Notes under the pieces: generated by a model
The model's database searches: none
What the model saw: the letters and a program-made list of their open reading frames with translations, nothing else
What the model was told of the DNA's origin: nothing
Origin: Pelomyxa schiedti
Taxonomy: Eukaryota > Protista > Evosea
Direction: 5' to 3'
DNA: 64,000 bases
Assembly (NCBI GenBank): GCA_020536535.1
Contig: JAHLWZ010000795.1
Location: forward strand, 1 to 64,000
In this document: positions 38,068 through 59,368 of the stretch, in pieces
Position numbering within the stretch: the stretch's first letter is position 1
Layout: every line of letters starts with the position of its first letter
Translations under genes and position numbers: made by a program

Positions 38068-41000
38068 CTAGAAAAGGGCAAACTTGGGCCCAACGCACTT
38101 TGTTACCCAAGGCACCTGGGTTCCTTGCGAGGTTTTCTTCACTTTCACAAGTGTCTCCTTGATAAGGTCATTAAATGGTGTTCCCGTTGGCACACTATTC
38201 AACTCTGCCAAGAAAAGTAAGTAGTTCATGTAATGAAAGGAGTCAGTACCTTCAATGAGGCAGGCAGTGAATAGAGTGTTTTTTTGTGGGCCTCCGTCCG
38301 GTTCGGTGTGAGGCAATGCTGTCTGGGGTGCTGCACGGAATGTTTTTTTTTTGTAAGATTGTGGTATTCAATTGAAGTGAGATAACCTGAACTCCTGGAA
38401 TAGACAAGGTAATAGCCGGCCGGAAGATTGTTTTGGACTAGGCGGTGCATGCGGCCTGCTTTATCAAAAAGAGGCCCAGAGTGTGTCTGGAGAGAAGTAG
38501 CATTAATGGAAATGGAGAAAACTCTCCGCGGAGCACACCCATTGTCCCCCAAGAGGGTCGTTGGAAGGGAATGCATCAATTACTACTATGACTAAGTGAG
38601 ACCTTGCAGCAAGGTTGTCCACTACATTTCCAAGTACGGCAACTTCACTGCCCAAAAATAAACAGTGATCCGAGTCCATTTGTTTCGTATGCCCGGCAAA
38701 GTAAAAAATGGTGGCAAGCTGCTCGTTTGTAGGTCACTACAAATTCCTGAAAAGGTAAGGCACACCTTATTGGTATCTGACAGGGCAGGCAGTGTGCCTA
38801 GGAAATCCTGAAAAGTACCCTTCCATGTGCCCCAGTCTGAGTTTGTTTTACATGTTACCTTGAAGTGGCATTGCGTTTCCAGAAACTACCAGGAAAGTAG
38901 CGAAGGGAAGATGAGAGAAAACATAAAAAAGATAAAGGCACAAAACTGTAGCAATATCTGTAGAGCCGCTTTCTGGATTTTTTAAGCTATTCCCAACCAC
39001 CAAGGCAAAGCACTCATAACCCAAATCGTGGAGGGTTCTGGCCCCTTTCATTATGAGAAGGTAAGTTTAACAAATTATTATAACGAGGGAGAAGCTCACT
39101 AAAAGTGTCACCAACCATGAAGCTAACTGCTGTATTTAAATCAAGTTGTTCATTTCTTTTGACCATTTTATATTGCCGGTTGTCTACATTCTGGATTTTC
39201 AGCCAGTCACAGAGCTGTTTCTCCTCGGTTGTGAGAATATGAATAAGTGAAGGACTTCTAGTGTTCAATGGAGCAAGTGGTGGTTCCTATTGTTTTCATT
39301 TAAAAAAAACCATGTTGGTTATATGACTAGTGTTTTTGTCATCTTACTCGTGAGTTGCTTGTTCCTCTCTCATCCAGTCCCATCGATGAGTTGGCAATAA
39401 TCTTCCCTGTGTTTGGTGTAGAGGATGTGCTCACTTGTCCACCTATGGGTTCTTGCCTCTGTCTGTTCCCCACATGGGAATAAGGGTCTGTCTGTATACC
39501 ATCACTCACAGCTGAATTCATGCCATTTCCTCTGATGGCATCCTTGGTAGGATCATAGGTACCTTGCCTCACTCCTATATTACTAGTAATGTCAGCCCCG
39601 AGGGTTTGTTGGATAGCTGTGTTTTCAGAATCTTTGGTTATTGCAGACAGTTCTTGGGAATCCCGTTCGGTTACTTTTTTTTTCACTTCATCACGCACCC
39701 AATTTGCAATCCACAGGTGGGTATCCAAAATATGAAATTCCGCTTTTCTACGACAGTTTACCTGTCTCATGCGCAAACGAAGTTTGAGAATGAAGAATCG
39801 GAAAATCTTGTCATGCTGGACCTGAGTTTTCCACATACCGTATGGAAGTAGAAGTAGGTCAAATGGATGTGGACGATTCCTCCCACAAGAAGTAGCAACA
39901 ACACAGAGCACTTCACTTAGTTGTTTCCTGCGCCTGTCGGAAAGCAGTCCTCCACCCTGGACATTCTCATGGGCATTGGTTATTTCAGTGGGCTTGGTTA
40001 GTGAGGAAACATAGTCATCCAATTCCGATAACAAAAACTCCACCTCGGACCCATAGGCTGAGACATCTGCTGGAGACCGGGCTGCATCCCACCCTCCGTT
40101 TATGGCCCAGCCACTGTGGTTCATATGCTGATGCAGCCTCACAATATCGGCAAAGTTCAAGTGACGTTTCTCAGGAACTTCTGGCCGTCTCCCCCTTAGT
40201 TGAGGCGAGTACATCGTCATCTTGTTCGAAATTGGGCATACTAGCACCCTTAGCAAGAATCGGTCGAACAGTGCCCCCTGGTTTGCATCCATTGGAACTT
40301 CATTGCTTGCGGCAAACACAGTATGCAAAGGGAGGTGAATGAGCTCTGTCCCGTCAAAGAAATCACGTTCATTGAGGATTGGGAGGAGGACGGTAAGCAC
40401 CTGCCTCTGTGCCTTGAATATTTCATCAATAAACGCAAACAGAGTATGCTCTCCACACAACTTGTTTTGCTTACAGCGGACCAAAATGTTCCGGTCCAGT
40501 GCCTCCAAATCAATTGTTCCCACCAAATCATCCAACGTCGTTCCAGCATGTAGCACAATGTTGAAGAAACTCCTTTTCCCCACCTCAGTGTGGATCACCT
40601 TGCACACATCGATACAAACGGCGCTTTTCCCAGTCCCGGGAGGCCCAAAAAGTAGCACATGTTGCCTGCAAAGAACTGCAAGCATGCAAATCTTGATTGC
40701 TTCATCGCGTTCAACAAAGGACCTCTCAAGTGCCTTGAACAGTTTATTGAGGCGTTTGCTGAAAGAATCCATCCAATTTGAGCCGCCACTTGCACAGGAT
40801 CCACTGTTTCCCGGCACTAAGAGAATTTCGTCGTTCCACTCCTCTTGGTTTTTGGGTATTGCTGGTTCATCATCTTTATCTTTTGTGGTTGGAACTTTTT
40901 CAGGGACGCCCGCAGTTGCATTCACTGACAGTGCCGTTGTTGGGGAAGATGAGACTGCTTGCGTGGACGTCGTTTCCGTTGTGTGAGATGTTGAACCCTG

Positions 41001-41255
41001 TTGTGTGTTGTTGCCGTCATCGTGTCGAGGCGGCGTACCCTGTGGTACAACTTCCGGCTTCTGCGAACCACTGCTGGCTCTGATCCTCGTAACAGGCGGT
41101 GGTGTTGTTGTTTTGTCATTCCGCTCGATTTCGGGTGGCGGTTGGTTCGCGGTGGAATTTGGGTTGAGCGACGCGGTGGATTCCGCCGACGGCGCAGAAA
41201 TTGAGTGGCTGGGCGGCGCCGCTGATCGGGTTTCGTCTTCTTTCGGCTGAGCCAT
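38068..41255 (-). CDS. RavA/MoxR-family AAA+ ATPase fused to a SAM-like segment and a caspase-like (peptidase C14) domain lacking the catalytic Cys
   Basis: AAA: GPPGTGKS, FIDEIFKA, LNERDF, ASNEVP, LFDRFLLR, SDRR. A phase-0 intron 39347-39287 (gtaaga..caatag) links it in frame to QLCDWLK.., then FALVVGNS-LKNP, FYFAGH, VIDAF, YYLVYS, TLFTACL, QVPW. Confidence 0.8.
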
Positions 41256-43174: not shown

Positions 43175-46100
43175 TTATGTGTTGAGCTTGTTTTTGTAGT
43201 ACCCCATTTCCCTCACCTTCCAAGGTACTTGATCCAGGGGAGCATCGTGGCATCCCTCCCCAACTTTTGGTGGCTGCCGGCATATGCTGCAAATCCCAGG
43301 TGTGCACCTGGTGCTTTCCCACTCAGATTGAGGCACATTGCAAACTGCACATGTCTCCATGCACACTTCACTTCGAGCCTGTTCCATTGTGAGTGTTTTT
43401 CCACACCGCGAGCATTGCCCAGGTGCTCTGGGGCACCTCCCTTTGGCACATGGGCCATGGCACAGGGGACAACTGGTGCAAATGGGTGACTTGACATTTA
43501 GCCCACAGCAGGTGTATATGAACGGGCTCGTGAATATGGTGCTGATTCCAAGTGTGAATGCGGCAAGTGCTGTGTTCTCTGCGTCCCTTTTTTTCTTGCC
43601 CCAGTGCTCATTGGTGGTTATGTGAGGTCCGAGTACCATCTGATGAGGGACCGCCTTCAGTGCGTGATGATAGAGAAGACTAGAATGCGCTGTGACTGTG
43701 CGTTTTTGGCATGTGTAGAGCCGGTGGTGGTTCCATGAACTGAGCGGAACTTTTTGACCGCATTTGCAGTCCTTTCCGGACTGTCCGCATTCGTTTGCCA
43801 AGTGGTTTTCCTCTTCGGGTAAGGAAATCTCCTTCTGGCACCTCTTGCATGTACTCATGCGTTTCGGGCATTCTTTGGTGTGCTCAGTGTACCTTTTTTT
43901 TGGGCCATTCCATATCCCACAGAATTCGCATGTTACTTTATTTTCTTCACACGCGTGTTCCATGTGGTGAGTTAGATCTCTTCTCAAGAATTTTACAGGG
44001 CAAAGTTTGTAGCGGCAGGACACCTTGTAGGAAATACAAATGGCTTTTCCGGCATCCGGTATCAAATGCTCTTCCAGCCCACAAATCGGTACTTTCTTAC
44101 AACAAAAGCTTGCCGATTTGGGTATGGATGCCGAAGTAGCCAAAATCTCTCTTTCTTCAGCAGCTCCAAGAGGACAGCTCCATGAGCAAAGCCGACATTG
44201 CGTTGCATAGTGAGAACCCTGCAGAAGCTCTTTACTTGTGCACAGCTTGGAACAGAACCCACAGGTAACAGATACACAGCTGCGATCACATTTCATCAGG
44301 AGATGAGAACTGTATTCTGTCACGGGTAGCTGTTGCTTACAGTAAGGGCAAACGATGATACTACGTGCACAACCACTCAGAAGGTGTATATCTAAATCGC
44401 GGTATGGCAACCGGATATTACAATTTGGGCATTCTATGAAGAAGTGTTCTCCCCTACATTCATACAGCCAGTGACGAACCATTTCATCTATACGTATACC
44501 GTCACTGCAATAGATGCATGGAATTGGAATCCGTCTAAAAGGGCAATAAGGAATATGCCGGGATAAATCACGCACATGGTCACGGCAAAAAATACATAGT
44601 TCTCTTTCTGGGCAGAATATAGCATGCCTTGTTTCATCACGCTTTTGGAGGTGAAAGGCTTTTTTTTCCTCCTTCATCTTGGAACATAAGGCTGTATACA
44701 GTGCTCCTTCAGCGTAACTCTCCCCACAATCTGTGCGGTCCTTTGCTGAAGTGTAAAGGTTTTTGACTGTGTGATACACACCAGTATTATACATTTCAAT
44801 GCTCGGTTGGTTAGGATATAGCAAACGTGCTTCGTCGTAGGAAACACGAAAGTGAACAGGCTGTGTGCACCCGGGGTTGTAAATACATAGACCTTTTGAC
44901 AGATAGCACTGCCCAGTGATATGTTCAAACATGTATCTCATAACCCCTGTGTAACCACATTGTTGCGGACATGGTTGAACATACTTGGGACACTCGAATT
45001 TCAGGTGGTCATCCAGGAGATGCGCTGGCATGGACTCATAACAGAACTGGCACTGTGCCATATTTACCCCTTCTTCGTGCTGAGTCAATTCCTCCGATAT
45101 CAATTTTATTATAGCAAGCTTGCGCAATTTACCCATTCCCACCAAGTGCTTTCTCTCCATAGGGATAAGATTCTGGAGGTTATTGCCAAAGGTTGTTGAG
45201 GCGAGACTACAATCGGGAGGATTGTTGGTTGGCCTTATTGTTATATGTTCCTTCCAGTGCTGCTTTTCATCCTTCTTCACTACTTGTTGGTTACACATTT
45301 GGCAGGAAACGTAGAAACTATTGCATTGCTGATTTAAGTGCGTTTCCAATTCGGCAAGAGTCATCTGATTAGCTGTACACGCAGGAAAGATACAAGAAAC
45401 TTTGACTGCTGGGCATTGACGCAAGTGACCAGGAAGTTCTCTCATTACGAGGGCCTCACGACAAAGGAAACAAGAAACATTAAAACCTTTACATTCAAAC
45501 TGCAAGTGCTTCAGCTGGTGTTTCAATATAATATGTTTTTGGCAAAAAACGCACTTCCTGAATGCTTTGGCGCATTTACGCATATGAAAACCAAGGGAAA
45601 TGTTTGCAGTACTACCATTTGTGGTAAAAAAGCACACTGGATCCATACAGTGGGGACAGGGGAGTGGAATCGAACACGAAGCAGATTTCAAAAAATGTTC
45701 ATGTAGAGTTCCAAGAGTAAAACCATTGGCGCCACACAGAGTGCAGGATACATGAAATTGGGTGCAAACACTGAGGTGTGCAGCAATTTCATGTCTAAGA
45801 AATTTCATGTGACAGAACGGACAGTGTAGAACAAAATTTAGGCATAATCGTTGGAGATGGTCCCGAAGTACCCGTGGTCCACAACAAGAAGCTGAACAAT
45901 AAGGGCATGAATTGTCATTCTCAACAGAATTGTATACATCATTCTCAAGTTTGAGACAACAGTCTTTAGCTTTACAAATTTTGAACCTTTGTTCACACTT
46001 GAGCTTGTGGTCAGACATTGTATCCAATTGGAACAGTTGCAAGCAGTTGTGACACATTACACGGGGATTTGTGCACTGCGCAACATGCTCGCTCTTCTTT

Positions 46101-49100
46101 TCACGGGCTGAGCGAGGGGTCGGCGGTAGAGTACAGTTACAGTCTGCACATGTAATTGGAACTGCAGTACAGTCGCTATCCAGATGGTTTGCCATAACCT
46201 CAGTCGGAATTAGACTTGCGCAGTGCTTGCATTTCTCTAGAGGATCGCAGAAATGGTTGGTGCAAGTGTCAAAAGTATTCCTGCATATAAGACAGAATCT
46301 TTCTGCGCTGCAAACATGTGGATTCCCTTTAAAGCATTTGCATTTCTCACAAATGTCCTCTGGTTTCCCACTTGGACACCTAGTGAGGTGTTCACGTTGG
46401 TCTTTTCTCTGTATTGGACATAGGCAGTTTGGGCATTTCCAGTGTCCCTCGCAGTCTGTATTATAATGCTTAAACCTCATTGAAGGCTTAATCTCTGTCC
46501 TACAGTACTCACAAAATGTAAGAGTTTCCTCCCGTTTGGGGCAAACCTCGGCCATGTGCCTTTCTTGGTCAACAACCCTTACTTGTTCATTGCATTGGGT
46601 ACATTCTACCGTGGTCCTTAGGGCACAGAGCTTTACATGCCTGCTGAAAATGAATGGAGGAACATCTGTTTTGCATACAGGGCATGCAACAGGTAGGTTT
46701 TTTATACACGGTACATCTGAGAGCCATGGGTCACTTAAATCTGTTGTGGTCAGAGCAAATGCCTCTTCTGGAGAAATGGTATGGCGCAGATCGAACTTCC
46801 GAGACACATCATTTACTAGAGAACGGATTTCCTCTCGAGCAGGATCTTTCATTTCTTGATCAGGGAGTGTGAAGGCACTTGGTACAAGGGTATCAAGCAT
46901 ATTGGTCGAACCATCCTTCGTACTGCACTTAATAAGGGGTTGCTCATTCTCCTCAGCGAAGAAGATAGAGTTATCACTGTCCACATCATCGGGCTTATTC
47001 CCATTTTTTTTCCACTTCAGTACAAATTGAAGCAACTAAAGTTGGTGGTGTTCAACACAACTGAGCAAAAAAATATGAGTGAAAAGAAAGACTACCTTTT
47101 TGCAGATATCAATTATAAGAGTTTTCAAGTTCACATTCATTGACCCTTGGAGCTCATGTCCAAACAGACTGATATCAATCTTAACCATTACAACCACAGA
47201 CTTATCGTCAGAGGTAACTTCCCCCATTACTTGTAAGTTATTCACAACCAATACGCCCTCACATAGGGTCTTCAATCTTGTAAGTAGAGAGTCAAGAAAT
47301 TCTCCTCCTACTGCGTCAGCAACAAAGGAAGCCATTTGAATTGCACCAACTATCAACCACTTTACGAACCCAGGGGCCCACTTAGAAACTCTCCTTTGGG
47401 CTCTTTGTAGTGCCTTCTTGCATACTTTGAAAATCTTCCCAATGCAGTAACGCAATCCACCCACAATTGCAGATACAACCATGGCAGCATTCAGATTCCG
47501 AATACCAAGTTCAGCACGGATGTTTGGTACAATCTTAGTCCAGGTGACTTTCAAACTGCCAGATAACTCAATTTTATTGTTTTGTTCTTCTGCTCTAGTC
47601 ACTTCAATAGCGTTATCTTCAGATTGGGGATCTTCTCTACTCAAAGAAAGTCGGACAGCAACATTCAAAGATGGTCCCTGACCTTGTCTGCGTTCAAAAC
47701 CAATTTTGGTGCCGATGGTAAGACCAAGACTCTTTGGAAGAATAGAAACTTTGGCATCAAAAAGAAACGCAACTTCCCTGGTCCCTGTATTCACGGTCAA
47801 GTCGACTGAGAGCTCTTTGTTTGAGCCTCCAAGTATAAATAGAACAGTTGATCCCACTTTACATGTCCACTCTTGAATGAGGAGCTGGAGTTTAAGGAGA
47901 AGAGATGGGGAAGTAAAATCAATAGTATTTGCAAGTGAACAGAATAAAATTTTGGCATCTAGACCGAGCCATGACATCTGAGCTACAAAGCCTAAGAACA
48001 TATTCTCCCTTTGTAATAGGGGAATGCCTTTTCGGCCTGTGCTCTGCTGTATAATAGATAGGAGAGAGTTCTGGTTCTGTGCGGGCTTGATTTCCATTGA
48101 GGGGATACTTGTGAGCTCTTCCCTATCAAGCTTGATCAGTAGACCTAACTCTTTGACTTGTGGGAAGGCATGATCGAGAGTCTCAACATCCTTGTAGGAG
48201 CATCCAGTGAATAATCGGACAATTGAGCCCAATGTTACTTCTTTACAAAATAGGTAAATAGTTGAGATCGTAGGTTGTCCGGCAATCAATGAAACCCTAA
48301 GTAAAGCTTCAAATGCTGGCTTTGGCCCATCATCCCAAAGGGCTCGTATGGCACCACCAAACATGAATGAAATGGTGAGGGGTGCTGAAATACTAAGTGC
48401 CCCTCGTATTCCATAAACAGCAAGGTGTTTCAATTTGGGAATAAATAGAGAAAGAGGAATTCCTGTCTCACGATTACCATCCAGCTTCAGGGAAGCCGTA
48501 AGTGAAGGTGGAATTAATAGCCCTTTGAGAGAAGCTCTCAACTTCAGATCATGTGCAAAGAGAAGACAGGTCTTGAGTGAAATTGATAGAGGATTGACAT
48601 CAATTCTCAAGGTACAAGTACCAGCTTTTAGACCAGCACAAGGAAGTTCAAATTTCTTTAAAGCAACCATCATATATGCAGATGAGTCTGCAACTACAAA
48701 ATCAGCTTTAAAAGGTTCCCCTGTAAGCCCAATCCATTCAAAAAGTTGCCCAGTTAGAGAAATAGAGACAGCGAGGCAAAGAAAGGAATTTTCCTCCCGT
48801 AAAAACAAGTGCCTTGCACCATCAGTGCATGAGGAAACCAGATTTGTGATTTCAGTACCATCGTCAGTAATTTGTGGTTTTGCACCATGCAACCACTCAA
48901 ATCGCTCGGGAGATACATCAATAGGTAGAGAAGGCAATGATGTACCAAATAAAACAGATACGATTCTAGATAAAGACAGATTGCTGAACTCTAACATAGC
49001 ACATGTTCTGGACATATGGTGCAGTAAACAGGCCTTGCAATCAATTACTTCAGAAAGGCCTTTTATGGAAACACAAAGAGAAAAAGCAAAGGAAGATGAA

Positions 49101-50491
49101 AGCAAAGATTGCGCTGAAGAGTCCTTCACCTTTTGCAGCTGCAATAATAATGTGTAGTCTCGGAGAACTATCTTTTTCAGAATTTCTTGGGTGTCCCCAT
49201 TTCTATCTTCAAAGATGCCAAGCTCATGTAAAATGTCAAGAAGGCTAATACTATTGGCATCTGGTTTTTCTCCGATTGTTTTTAACATAGTTGGTTTGCG
49301 TAGATGCAAGAATAAATGTGGATTACTATCCCCAAGATCAAAACCAGACTCCATATCCAGAGGGATGCCAAAGAGATGAATACCTTTGACAGAAATTGTC
49401 AAATGTTTCACATTCAAACCCTGGCCACCGCTCACTTCAAGTTCGATATTCATATGAAACAGGGTTGCTTCAGGCAATTTCAATATTTCAGTCTGTGTAA
49501 CCCTTTGCAACACATCTGCTACGGTGTGGAGGCCAAGTATCTCGTCCATAAACTTCACCACTTGCCCCATTCGTACTCGAATTTTTCCTTTGAAACATAG
49601 CAGTGACCTTGAGCCTGACTTTGTCACCACACTTGTTGTTGGTGGATGAGAAAGAAGTGGCCTTGAACCCTGCGGTATCGGAAACGAGCTTTGATCCACA
49701 GCAGATTGGTTACTGTCATTCACCATTTTTGTGGCCATCTTGAGATGCAACCACTCACCAAAACTGACCTTAAATAGCTCAATCTGTATTTCAGGGGGAG
49801 ATCCGAATTGAATGTCAGCATCAAGGGAAACTTGGATCTCAGCCTCTGCGATTTTCTTAAAAAGCTTCTTCACACCCACAAGGGCCTCTCTCGGGAAAGC
49901 ATGGCCAATATGTTCGAAAATCTTCCTGAGAGATGCACCCTTGCATGTCAGCTTCGCACCAGTTTTGGAGACTAGGACTGAAGCAAATGGATCCCCTTTC
50001 GCTTTTTTTCGTTTTGGTCCTTCTCCTTCTGTTCCTGGTTTCTTTTTTTCCCGTTCTTCCTGGGGTGGAACTTTCCACATCTGTTGAGAACATGTCCCGC
50101 CATCTACCTGATCACTACTGCTTCCAGCTCCATGAATTTCGTCATGAGGTGCACTAAACTGCTGAAGCAGTGAAATTTTCGCAGCCCATGATACAGAGTC
50201 ACCAACCGAGACCTTCTCGAGCGTGCAGCTCACGTCCTGGTCCCGGAGTCCAAGGAATTCCAGTGTAGTTCTGCACTGAAATTTGAGCCCTTCTTCGCAA
50301 TAGAACCAATCATCTCTGACTGGAACAAGCTGTGCTGGTTGCGGGGCTATGGTTATGTCTTCCTCTTCATCTTCTTCCTTGAAGGTACATGAAGAAGCTG
50401 TTAAATGTGGTTGACATGCGTGCTGGGAAACGCATTTATTTAGTCGTTTTCTGTTTTCTTTTCTTTTTTAGGAGTGTTTAATACCTTGCAT
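43175..50491 (-). CDS. Giant (~2,390 aa) protein: ~1,100-aa beta-strand-rich region, about 30 TRAF-type zinc fingers, and a hydrophobic/Cys-rich tail
   Basis: ORFs 47036-50233 and 43175-47035 are in the same frame and are joined by a 60-nt phase-0 intron 47095-47036 (gtagtc..ctttag). Start exon ATG CAA G at 50491 with intron 50484-50398. Repeated CxxC-x(10-12)-H-x(3-5)-C units. Confidence 0.8.
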
Positions 50492-53604: not shown

Positions 53605-55521
53605 TCAAGTCCAAGGCAAACCATTTGTGAATAGAAGGGGTCCCATGAGGTTATAGGCCAAAAAATAGAACAGTATAAGGCGAGACGGAATTGTACTTCC
53701 AGCCCGGGCTTGACCTTTTTTCCCTTTTGTATCATCCCTGAAGTCACAGAATTTTGTGGCACACCACCAATAGAGGGGAGGCACTGCTGACAAAAATCTA
53801 GTGATGACTTGTACGTGCATGAAGGTGATAGCGAACGCAACAAGGAACAGCCAGTAACACACATAGGGAAGCACTTGTGGTGATGACAAGTAGGGATTGA
53901 GGCAGTTGCTACCAAAGGCAATGGTTGAGTGCTTGGTGGTGGTTTTTTGTTTAGTTGCGAATGCCTTGTGATGCACTTGTGCCACATAAGTTCTGAGATA
54001 TGCCACAATTCCACATAGAGACATAATTACCATAGGTGTGGCTAATAAGAAGTTCGGAAGCTGCTTGGACTGATAGTAATGAAAGAATCCTTGATTCCTG
54101 AATGAATATAAGAAAAAGGCAGGCTGTCTATTCCCCTTGTAGTATGAGAAGTTACCAGTAATAGCTCTGAATAAATCCATAAAAGCCAGGTATTGTAGAA
54201 TTGCACCATGACATGTCCACTGGAGCGGGATGATCAACTGAGCAATAGCGGTACCGTCCATACAGTTGTATACCAATGTAGGGAAGGGACATTAAACCAA
54301 CGCGGAAAAGTGTGAACAACCAATGAGCACCAATTTTCTGATTTTGAAGTGAGGATTTGTAAAGGGAGACATAGTAGATACCATCAATCTGTGATACACA
54401 GTGGGAACGAGGAGATTGGAAAAAGGGAAAAAGGAATCCACAGCTTCAAACAATAAGAACCCAGCACAAACAATCCCGTTCCCACGCGTAGCTACCGTGA
54501 GTGCAAAAAAAACAGTACTCCCTGAATAAGGAGTTCAAGGTTAAAAAACGAATGGCGTGGCAGTACCTACCCCAAAACCTCTTTTTGTGCAGCATCAAAC
54601 AAGCACCAAAAAAAAGCATTGCAAAAGGGCTTTCTGTGTATCTGCAGATGTAAATTACTAAAGCAGTTGGAAAGTGAGAGCCCCACATTGAAGACATGAA
54701 TATGTTGGCAGGATTCAAACAAAATAATATGCTTGAACAGAATGCAATTTTCTCATTTTTGAGAACTGCCAGTGATAACCTGAGGCGTAAGTAAAGTAAT
54801 ATGATGGTTTTTTAAACCCTCATATAAAAGGGCTCAAAATACTTTCACTTGTATCATACCAGTAAAAGAGTACTGAGGCTAAAATAAAACAACAGTTTGT
54901 AAACAAAAAACCCGAAAGCATTGTGATTGTAAACTGGTTTGCTGGGAGCCATGAAAGCCCTATCAAAGATATAATTCAGTGCAGGCTTTCCACAGTAATA
55001 TTAACAAAGCAAGAGCAAACGAATTTCAATTTTTCAAATTCATCCACCCTAGGATGGACACACATAACTGGGCTACCTTTTGACAAAGCCCTAACGCACA
55101 AAGGCAGCAACGGGAAAAAAGCGTGGGCCTGCTCGGTCTCATACCCCCGCTCCGAAATCCCCACAAAGTACACAGCGTCCCACGAGTGCAGCCCCTTCAG
55201 CCCCGCGCCTACGCCCCAGTCCACCCACGACCCGCCCCCCATAATAATGATTCCCCCCTCTCCCTCTCCCTCTCGCTCTCCCTCGCGAGGGTTGCTGCCA
55301 CTGCGGAATGGCAGGCTCCCCGATGTGTCATAGTCGTCCACAAGGGAGTCCAGCAACACGCACGCCAGAAGCACCACGAGCCGCACCGACCCCGCCACCC
55401 CAGCAACTCTCCACGCTCTCGACAACATCAATGATGGCGTGACGTCGACTTCTCGGATGGAGGGTGGCACAGTTGTGCTTTGTGCCAAAAGATATTGCAC
55501 CACAACGCCTACTGTAGGCAT
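53605..55521 (-). CDS. PIGV: GPI mannosyltransferase II
   Basis: WDAVYFVGISERGYETEQAHAFFPLLP, QLPNFLLATP, FMHVQVITRFLSAVPPLYW, and multiple transmembrane segments. Confidence 0.9.
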
Positions 55522-57661: not shown

Positions 57662-59368
57662 TTAAGCGTAGAACTGAGCTACAAAGGCTACAGAGTCTGA
57701 ATTGGGTGATATGGCCGACTTGAGTTCCTCAATGGTGCAGAAGGTGGGCCACTCAAATGCCATGGTTGACGATGGCGCTTCTTGGTTGATTGTCATCTCA
57801 CACCGTTTCAGGGCTCTTTCTCTCGAGGGTGAAAGGAGTGACAGAGCGGCCTTCAGAACCAGTGGGAATCTCAAGTCCTCATGCGATTTGATTTGAATGT
57901 CCAGGTTGCACAGCTCCAGTGCAAGCAAAACATTGCCATCTTTGTGTGACAGAATGAACCTGAAGGGGTACCCATGCTCATGGGTGTGAAGCATGTGGCT
58001 TCTGACATTTGCGGATCCCCTTCCAGCTAATTTCTGAGCATTACGTACAATCCAAGTGATGCCAGAAGCTCTTGATACCTGCTCTGTCAGTAGCGCTATA
58101 GTTCGCTGTTGCTCATTCACACACTTCACAAGGCAAGAGAAATGGAATTGCTGTGACGACGCAAGGTGCTCGGCATGAAGCTTGCGCTTTGCGGTGAAAG
58201 TACATCCAGTAACTTCACATTGAACAGTTGTTTCAGGGCAGTCATCTCTGACGTGCTTTTCCATTGTACTTCTAGGGGAACTTACTCCGCATCCACTTGG
58301 GCACGTGAGAGGAAGTAATGGGCAAACGGAACGGTGCTCTTCAAGCTTCCCGGATTCTATTTCAGTAACACCACAGGATAATGGGCAAGGAACAAGCTGA
58401 TGTGGGCATGCTTTCTGGTGATCACGCATACTTTCTCTTGGGAGTGTTGCGTCACAACCTTTAAATGTGCACGCAATAGGTTCCTTTGGACATATTCTAC
58501 GGTGGGTAGCAAGTGCTTCAAGACTAAATACGGCAGGGCAGCCCTTTGGACATTTCAATTGTAGTCTGCAGTTACTAAGAGCGAAACAAAAGCAGTGGGA
58601 TTTCTTACTTGTTGTAGGAATTTAAGACGATCCTAGGAAGTGGCTTCATTGTCTTTCGGGTTATACTCTTCCTGCAGGTTGGGCAAGCGCTCCTCCCTGA
58701 TCTCAACATGCTATCAATGCAAGAGCGGCAATACACAGTAGCCTGCAAGAAATAGAAGGTTAAAACCCCAAAGATAGCCGCACCACCAAAAACAGACCCA
58801 CAAGCAAGCACAAGCAATCCCACAAGCACAGACACAAAGCCAAAACCTCGTCGTTCTCAGCGTGATACACGGGGTCCGTGGCCAACCTCAAGCACACAGG
58901 GCACAAGAACTTTTCCCTCTCAGCCTGGTCAACAAACAGCTCCAAGTCCGGCACCCTCGCCTCTCCCTCTCCCTCTCCCCCGCTCCCGGACCCGCCCCCG
59001 CCCCCGCCCCCGCCCCCGGCCCCCTTCTCCTTCCCCCCTTGCCGCTGCGTCCCCCCCTTGCCGCCCTTGCCTCCCCATCCCCATCCCCCTGCCCTCTTTG
59101 GCGCCGATGCAGCCCTCGTGTAGTCCTCGCGGTCCCCCACGACGTAGCAGTCGTCGTCGTCGCGGCCGCGCGGGGATCTCGGCATGTAGTCGTACTCGGA
59201 GGAGCCCGTGGAGGACGACGAGGAGAAGCCGTCGCGGGAGTCCTCCTCGCTGCCCCACCCCCCGCCGCGCTCCCCCTCCGAAGACGACGAAGACGACGCG
59301 TAGTGGTGCTTGTCGTGATAGTGTCGGTCTCGGTCTCGGTCTCGGTCTCTGTCGCGGTCTCGGCTCAT
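57662..59368 (-). CDS. TRAF-like protein (RING, TRAF zinc fingers, MATH-like domain) with RD/Ser/Gly-rich N-terminus
   Basis: CPVC..YCRSC..CPTC RING-like; 4-5 zf-TRAF units (CPKGC, CTFKGC, CPLSC, CPSGC, CEVTGC); coiled segment; ITWIVRN..GYPFRFIL MATH-like strands. Confidence 0.85.
59325..59363 (-). repeat. (CGGTCT)n coding microsatellite encoding RDRDRD
   Basis: Four perfect units plus degenerate units immediately after the start codon at 59368. Confidence 0.9.

Follow-up and report, generated by a model that had tools for sequence, protein, structure and literature searches.

The DNA analysed here, hereafter the window, is a 64,000-nucleotide stretch (positions 1 to 64,000, forward strand) of a 163.9-kb contig (JAHLWZ010000795.1) from the anaerobic amoeba Pelomyxa schiedti. 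Its minus strand carries, at 50491-43175, the gene Pelo_10359 (GenBank KAH3757807.1, "hypothetical protein"), which in our reading encodes a 2,389-residue protein that joins a long amphipathic β-region to an array of TRAF-type zinc fingers. Two large minus-strand open reading frames (ORFs), 50233-47036 and 47035-43175, lie in the same frame and are split by one stop codon. An exhaustive HMMER search with the N-terminal piece returned a 100%-identical protein (P0002), which is the 2,076-residue KAH3757807.1, and mapping this protein onto the window places the start ATG at 50491 within a tiny first exon (50485-50491; ATGCAAG, that is, Met-Gln and the first base of an Ala codon). An 87-nucleotide (nt) GT-AG intron (50398-50484), a 3.3-kb exon, a second GT-AG intron of 60 nt (47036-47095) and a 3.86-kb exon follow. 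This second intron is in frame and holds the TAG stop at 47038-47036, so that its removal joins the two ORFs into a single frame of 2+1101+1286 residues. A preliminary description, made from the letters of this DNA alone, had proposed both the junction at 47095/47036 and a single protein of about 2,390 residues; the same intron is present in the GenBank model, and the proposed size agrees with ours.

Support for one polypeptide is provided by the relatives of this protein. The position of the second intron (…CKK|LLQF…) is kept in two paralogs, where it measures 47 nt (Pelo_7632) and 45 nt (Pelo_2337), and the spliced junction (…IIDICKK|LLQFVLKW…) aligns to relatives without gaps. Moreover, a Trinity transcript of Diplonema ambulator (ORF P0007) and an intronless metagenome ORF (P0010) each hold β core, finger array and C-terminal tail in one frame, with the modules in the order seen in Pelo_10359. 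Given the conserved intron position, the gap-free junction and these two one-frame relatives, separate transcripts for the two large exons are very unlikely, and Pelo_10359 is, as judged from sequence comparison, a real, single gene encoding one polypeptide.

The GenBank model takes four more segments out of the last exon. The longest of these, 753 nt at 45233-45985, is open in frame and encodes about eight complete fingers, and such segments are retained in the relatives P0004 and P0006. The three smaller annotated introns (46664-46708, 46456-46546 and 46325-46377) are doubtful on the same grounds, and two of the small introns together put 26 codons into another frame. Read continuously, the last exon gives 1,286 residues without a stop, collinear end to end with three relatives: Pelo_7632 (P0004, residues 578-1847, 39.6% identity), P0007 (residues 877-2138) and P0010 (residues 647-1818). 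In addition, a 747-nt annotated "intron" of Pelo_2337 (L002 12554-13300) occupies the same place in the finger array, and it too is open, homologous and finger-coding. Because the excised finger-coding sequence stays open and is conserved in relatives, we favour the 2,389-residue reading, in which the third exon is continuous and the 753-nt segment most likely coding, and do not take the 2,076-residue GenBank model for the true protein. The annotated introns of about 750 nt in Pelo_10359 and Pelo_2337 would be either a systematic annotation artefact or cases of optional splicing of coding sequence (exitrons). Pelo_7632, annotated at 1,849 residues, is N-terminally short in its GenBank model: an open frame for the N-terminal module A described below (L003 6354-8000), homologous to residues 16-520 of the Pelo_10359 protein, runs directly into the annotated start, so the true size of this paralog should be similar to that of Pelo_10359. 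Public gene models of this family are hence wrong in places, with finger-coding sequence treated as intron and one paralog truncated at its N-terminus, which is a concern for any user of the Pelomyxa proteome.

The protein begins with an acidic segment (about residues 3-137; 49994-50397; isoelectric point, pI, 4.7) that is largely predicted to be disordered, the predicted local distance difference test score (pLDDT) being below 50 at residues 1-36 and 81-135. It contains a conserved EEDITIAPQP...DW motif in common with the neighbouring paralog P0001. The β-region follows and is made of two modules. In module A (about residues 138-535; 48794-49993), delimited by AlphaFold/DSSP and by domain matches to P0001, P0008 and P0009, groups of about four amphipathic strands are predicted, each followed by one to three helices, in units of roughly 100 residues; this module also stands alone in short paralogs. 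Module B (residues 538-1103; 47096-48793) is the conserved part of the β-region, with matches in P0003-P0007 and P0010. It is predicted to form long β-meanders of up to 11 consecutive strands and includes the most conserved motif of the family (R..TGCSYKDV..LD..FP). Inside module B lies a predicted antiparallel helical hairpin of 75 residues (47261-47488; pI 10.2), which DSSP assigns to helices 971-1007 and 1010-1046 in the model of the full N-terminal region and to helices 439-472 and 475-510 in a model of module B alone. VIA-align matches this hairpin to helical hairpins at a root-mean-square deviation (rmsd) of 1.6 Å. The basic helix KIFKVCKKALQRAQRRVSKW, which the preliminary description had placed at the end of the β-region, does exist but belongs to this hairpin, and three more predicted strands and one helix come after it and before the second intron.

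In the AlphaFold/DSSP assignment, residues 138-1103, approximately, comprise about 44 strands with a mean length of 10 residues and with interspersed helices. The model of the full N-terminal region was built from a 12-sequence alignment (pLDDT 62.8; predicted template modelling score, pTM, 0.43) and that of module B alone from nine sequences (pLDDT 74.1, pTM 0.62). In the latter, the runs of strands between helices are 6, 4, 1, 11 and 3 long, and a strand-helix-helix-strand element is the most conserved and best-predicted part (pLDDT 85-89). The two faces of the predicted strands differ strongly, with mean Kyte-Doolittle values of +2.5 for the apolar face and -0.8 for the other. This difference of 3.30 compares with 1.66 ± 0.20 after shuffling within strands, and so stands more than eight standard deviations above the shuffles; only three of the roughly 44 strands are apolar on both faces. 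About 1,100 residues had been described as alternating-hydrophobic strands with short helices among them, and this alternation is indeed far above chance. The first 135 residues or so, as the acidic, predicted disordered segment, do not count as β. Sequence comparison revealed no internal repeats in the β-region (hhalign of 11 segments, probabilities of at most 7%), and Pfam, NCBIfam and PDB profile searches gave no family match to it, the Pfam scans covering both the 1,046-residue N-terminal piece (E up to 0.1) and nine module B sequences (E up to 1). It is a previously undescribed, very rare amphipathic β-sheet region of about 1,000 residues.

An acidic linker of 117 residues (46685-47035; pI 4.5), conserved with P0006, leads from the β-region to the finger array (43700-46684), in which units of the form C-x2-C-x11-14-H-x3-5-C recur with a period of about 27 residues. 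The fingers fall into four blocks of 16, 2, 5 and 4 with three unique non-finger inserts between them. The previous estimate of about 30 tandem units was slightly high, since a permissive pattern finds about 27 and the strict pattern C-x2-C-x9-16-H-x3-6-C finds 19, but the TRAF type is correct: Pfam zf-TRAF (PF02176) matches with E 1.8e-8 (35.4 bits against a cut-off of 27), the TRAF4 finger structure 2yuc matches with E 3.4e-7, and CEP104_ZnF gives sub-threshold matches. In the Pelomyxa paralogs, in Diplonema and in the metagenome ORF alike, the Cys and His ligand columns do not vary, so that every finger has an identity of its own and the array forms an ordered structure rather than a drifting repeat. 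With 107 Cys and 53 His (160 zinc-ligand residues) in some 27 units, it is exceptionally long, in line with the preliminary description, and is among the longest ordered TRAF-type finger arrays that we could find. RING and MATH domains, said there to be missing, gave no Pfam match in either piece or in the GenBank protein.

The hydrophobic stretch and the Cys-rich tail noticed beforehand are both present. The tail (43175-43699; 174 residues and the stop codon) has 11 invariant Cys and a terminal ...D.V.W...E.GY(F/Y) motif. It has no significant match in our searches, the best being to the E3 region of RNF213 (E 0.08-0.16), and its similarity to the RING domains of TRIM21, CBL and LNX2 is non-significant (E 0.5 or worse). 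Assignment of the tail as a RING or IBR domain was rejected on the basis of these non-significant matches and of a Cys spacing that is not canonical. The hydrophobic stretch TALAAFTLGISTIFTSPFI (43517-43573) has a 19-residue Kyte-Doolittle mean of 1.50, and the five most hydrophobic 19-residue windows of the protein score 1.48-1.53. At the same position the relatives have about 10-12 hydrophobic residues followed by a conserved (Y/M)(T/N)CCG motif. A transmembrane anchor at ALAAFTLGISTIFTSPFIY, as the preliminary description had it, was therefore rejected, given this score and a hydrophobic run whose length is not conserved.

In structural comparison, the models of the β-region resemble the ApoB100 lipid belt and β-barrels in a generic way only. 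Using the full N-terminal model, Foldseek ranks the lipid belt of ApoB100 in low-density lipoprotein (9e9r) at the top (E 9e-6, probability 0.99, TM-score 0.14), and outer-membrane barrels rank after it; with module B alone, nothing in the Foldseek search reaches E <=0.001. VIA-align superposes module B on an ApoB100 segment (9coo_A) over 308 residues (Z 11.6, rmsd 13.6 Å) and, locally, on lipovitellin (1lsh_B; Z 8.8, rmsd 4.1 Å over 134 residues). Z scores of 11-13 are obtained for porins, Tom40 and VDAC, but with rmsd values of 14-20 Å over about 250 residues, so that these barrels share neighbour-strand topology only. The flat sheet of the CPAP G-box is also found (Z 8.9). The models thus suggest a large, gently curved antiparallel meander in which all strands pair with their next neighbours and which corresponds to no specific known fold.

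A kinship with the repeating-β-groove (RBG) lipid-transfer proteins AsmA, TamB, VPS13 and ATG2, suggested in the preliminary description with a Foldseek search as its check, is not supported by these comparisons. An RBG unit has at least 150 residues and consists of a five-strand meander with a crossing sixth element (helix and loop); the first domain of RBG proteins is homologous to Chorein_N, and the RBG families have been present since the last eukaryotic common ancestor (PMC7613979). No Chorein_N match to the β-region is found in Pfam or NCBIfam even at E 0.1-1, the predicted strands come in runs of 4, 6 and 11, and the family occurs in few protists. Foldseek puts ApoB100 and barrels on top, and no VPS13, ATG2, BLTP or TamB chain is among the top 50 matches listed in two PDB Foldseek and three VIA-align searches. 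In BFVD, a Chorein_N protein of a mimivirus matches very weakly (E 0.12, probability 0.08). RBG proteins also form a continuous groove with a hydrophobic concave and a hydrophilic convex side; the corresponding observation here is the strong amphipathicity of the predicted strands. Every testable feature of the RBG type except strand amphipathicity fails.

Relatives are extremely rare: of 1.84 billion cluster representatives, no more than 11 proteins reach E <=0.001. Eight come from Pelomyxa (five long paralogs and three short proteins limited to module A), and the others are the Diplonema transcript, an ENA metagenome cluster and a Logan fragment. The last, on the eukaryotic Logan contig SRR22803256 (L004 1688-2029), is a single exon-like piece that covers only the stretch with the best-conserved motif of module B. 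JGI metagenome contigs, scanned twice, yielded no relatives, homolog searches with the full-length profile and with the finger region (word-indexed) found only the query's own cluster, and the viral structures of BFVD gave no match at E <=0.001 and hence no support for a giant-virus origin. Module B, the fingers and the tail make up the conserved core of the family, and module A turned up only in Pelomyxa. On the metagenome contig that carries a family member, an upstream ORF (L001 1155-3038, plus strand, 627 residues) has no Pfam match; it was rejected as a divergent module A because similarity was not detectable, and it may nonetheless be an N-terminal part that has diverged very far. The family is previously undescribed and very sparsely distributed in protists, and its architecture is unprecedented.

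Within Pelomyxa, partial paralogs arose repeatedly beside full genes. The head-to-head neighbour of Pelo_10359, Pelo_10360 (P0001; 50721-52644, plus strand; 594 residues), has its start codon 229 bp from that of Pelo_10359 and is a partial paralog made up of the acidic N-terminus, module A and then a Ser/Thr-rich tail. It is most like the long gene beside it, at 352 bits compared to at most 125 bits for the other long paralogs, and is therefore a fairly recent inverted partial duplicate. Both genes open with a tiny first exon (ATGG in Pelo_10360, ATGCAAG in Pelo_10359) and a short intron. A second pair of short and long genes, Pelo_2338 and Pelo_2337, is arranged in tandem. In yet another paralog, Pelo_16943 (P0005, on a 12-kb contig), six fingers are followed by URGCP and URGCP-like large-GTPase domains (residues 2339-2940), and a second P-loop lies at the protein's end; this extension may be a real fusion, or else two genes merged in the gene model. 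The overall picture looks like a lineage-specific, fast-diversifying system.

Three other loci in the window, all on the minus strand, were identified by their domains. An ORF at 57662-58558 has ordinary TRAF-type fingers (zf-TRAF E 4e-18, zf-TRAF_2 E 9e-12), so conventional TRAF-like genes also occur near Pelo_10359. An ORF for a MoxR-type AAA+ ATPase is found at 39339-41255 (bpMoxR E 9e-35, with AAA_5 and AAA_lid_8), and two exons of a PIG-V type glycosylphosphatidylinositol mannosyltransferase (PF04188) lie at 53605-54276 and 54976-55521.

The Pelo_10359 protein is almost certainly cytosolic, to judge from its acidic N-terminus, which lacks a hydrophobic stretch of the signal-peptide type, and from its 160 zinc-ligand residues; the 107 Cys and 53 His of the finger array need a reducing, zinc-containing compartment. 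None of the 12 most hydrophobic 19-residue windows falls at the N-terminus, a result of hydropathy only, no signal-peptide or transmembrane predictor having been run. Within the cytosol, our favoured, although tentative, reading of the models is that the protein may be a β-belt that binds lipid or a membrane surface and is joined to a zinc-finger interaction scaffold. The apolar side of the roughly 44-strand sheet exceeds what about 210 helical residues can cover, by a rough estimate, so that it must pack against itself, against partners or against lipid. In the mechanism we envisage, the β-meander would offer one long continuous hydrophobic face, covered only in part by its own helices, and this face would sit on or wrap lipid, whether at a membrane surface, on a lipid droplet or as enclosed lipid, in an arrangement closer to the amphipathic β-belt of ApoB100 than to an RBG groove. 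The zinc-stabilised fingers and the C-terminal Cys domain would then form a long scaffold for protein interaction and signalling, as TRAF-type fingers do in TRAF proteins, so that the protein might tether or signal from a lipid surface instead of serving as a housekeeping lipid bridge.

Several observations weigh against a lipid-binding belt. The two models are only moderately confident and derive from alignments of 9-12 sequences, and every structural match has a TM-score of about 0.14-0.2 or an rmsd of 13-20 Å, which points to a generic antiparallel meander and not to a shared fold. Groove and belt alike are readings of predicted strands, and the apolar side of these could instead lie hidden within a two-layer sheet, under the helices or inside an oligomer. 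Moreover, we found in the protein neither a lipid-related domain nor a transmembrane segment or targeting motif. The next explanation in our ranking, a rather unlikely one, is that the β-region serves only as a protein scaffold, for instance as a two-layer sheet, solenoid or oligomeric assembly whose apolar face is buried in protein, and that the molecule is a structural or adaptor protein with no lipid role. Amphipathic strands are also the rule in β-sandwiches and in two-layer α/β folds, the interspersed helices could cover part of the sheet, and the most conserved, best-predicted part is precisely a strand-helix-helix-strand element; the score of the CPAP G-box sheet indicates in addition that meanders unrelated to lipid are matched too. 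The helices would, however, cover less than half of the 44-strand sheet by our rough estimate, and the top Foldseek match is a lipid-bound belt. Sandwich packing would also be expected to give compact domains of higher confidence and matches to sandwich folds, neither of which is seen.

An improbable explanation, ranked third, is that the β-region is a membrane-inserting or pore-forming effector of the barrel type in innate immunity or conflict, with the fingers as a sensor or regulatory arm. The highest VIA-align Z scores are those to the 16-19-stranded barrels maltoporin, OmpT, Tom40 and VDAC, and strands of about 10 residues with one apolar face would suit such a role, as would the hydrophobic halves of the hairpin (the equivalent P0007 helix reaches 2.05 on the Kyte-Doolittle scale), the expansion of the paralogs with their truncated copies and the joining of one paralog to URGCP-like GTPase domains; TRAF-type fingers, moreover, are typical of immune adaptors. 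The rmsd values of the barrel matches nevertheless imply that the model does not form a closed barrel as large as these, and we know of no cytosolic eukaryotic protein that forms a single-chain barrel of at least 25 strands. Homology to gasdermin, MACPF or aerolysin was not found in Pfam or PDB profile searches, and the immune context is circumstantial. The least probable of the four explanations is an RBG-kind lipid-transfer groove (VPS13/ATG2/AsmA/TamB-like) that bridges two membranes, with the fingers as tether. The strong amphipathicity of the strands, the meander of about 1,000 residues with helices between strand groups, which loosely recalls the RBG unit (PMC7613979), and the very weak BFVD match speak for it. 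Against it stand the lack of Chorein_N or any other Pfam or NCBIfam match at the relaxed thresholds, an N-terminus that is acidic and predicted to be disordered instead of an amphipathic helix or transmembrane segment, and strand runs in the better model that do not fit five strands and a crossing element. The absence of RBG chains among the top 50 matches listed, the absence of a conserved membrane anchor and the discrepancy between families as old as the last eukaryotic common ancestor (PMC7613979) and a family of 11 members in 1.84 billion proteins argue in the same direction.

If the β-region does bind or carry lipid, as the favoured belt reading would have it, then a lipid-handling β-sheet would have arisen independently of the five universal bridge-like families and would be directly coupled to the finger type of TRAF immune adaptors, which would be relevant to researchers of membrane contact sites and of evolutionary immunology. 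A hint of a conflict or surveillance role for the family, perhaps, comes from the way in which it has expanded within one lineage, with truncated copies and a GTPase fusion, and from its TRAF-type fingers, and such a role is of interest since Pelomyxa schiedti is full of prokaryotic symbionts. We consider it a doubtful but conceivable proposition that the β-region of Pelo_10359 is the first known case of a new, non-RBG class of amphipathic β-sheet proteins in the cytosol, an intracellular "ApoB-like belt" that coats or channels lipid and is wired to a rod of about 27 fingers and a Cys-rich, possibly E3-like head, and that such a protein marks or tethers lipid surfaces such as droplets, or vacuoles containing symbionts or prey, for TRAF- or ubiquitin-type signalling in protists. 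The immediate impact is moderate, as the organism is hard to work with and the family is tiny.

Compared with known systems, the Pelo_10359 protein resembles the RBG proteins (VPS13, ATG2, BLTP1-3 and AsmA/TamB) in its very long cytosolic amphipathic antiparallel meander, with helices between strand groups and with hydrophobic and polar strand faces. It differs from them in having no Chorein_N-type first domain, no sequence or profile match and no terminal amphipathic helix or transmembrane anchor, in strand runs, albeit from models of moderate confidence, that are not five with a crossing element, and in having no match to solved RBG structures among the matches listed. Unlike the universal RBG families, moreover, it is confined to a few protists and is fused to zinc fingers. 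A likeness to RNF213, the giant E3 ligase that acts on lipid droplets and bacteria, consists in a giant cytosolic protein with a weak tail match and is a lead only, because the tail matches are non-significant, the Cys spacing is not that of a canonical RING and AAA+ modules are absent. With TRAF4, TRAF6, XAF1, TRAFD1 and CEP104 the protein shares the finger type and the period of about 27 residues. TRAFs and XAF1 have 4-7 fingers, compared to about 27 here, and consecutive fingers of TRAF6 form a rigid elongated unit. Unlike TRAFs, Pelo_10359 has no RING, coiled coil or MATH domain, its array contains three unique inserts and gives way at the end to a Cys-rich domain of another kind, and its fingers are preceded by a β-region of about 1,000 residues that is found in no TRAF. 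ApoB100 and lipovitellin, finally, differ in that sequence similarity is lacking, the TM-scores are 0.14-0.17 and the rmsd values 13-36 Å, a vitellogenin-N domain is not detected by Pfam in Pelo_10359, and the N-terminus, unlike that of secreted ApoB, is acidic and free of a signal-peptide-type hydrophobic stretch in hydropathy windows, no predictor having been used. The amphipathic strands of about 10 residues and the gently curved open meander of the Pelo_10359 model are, however, features of these lipoproteins as well, and ApoB100 provides both the top Foldseek match of the full model and the longest VIA-align alignment.

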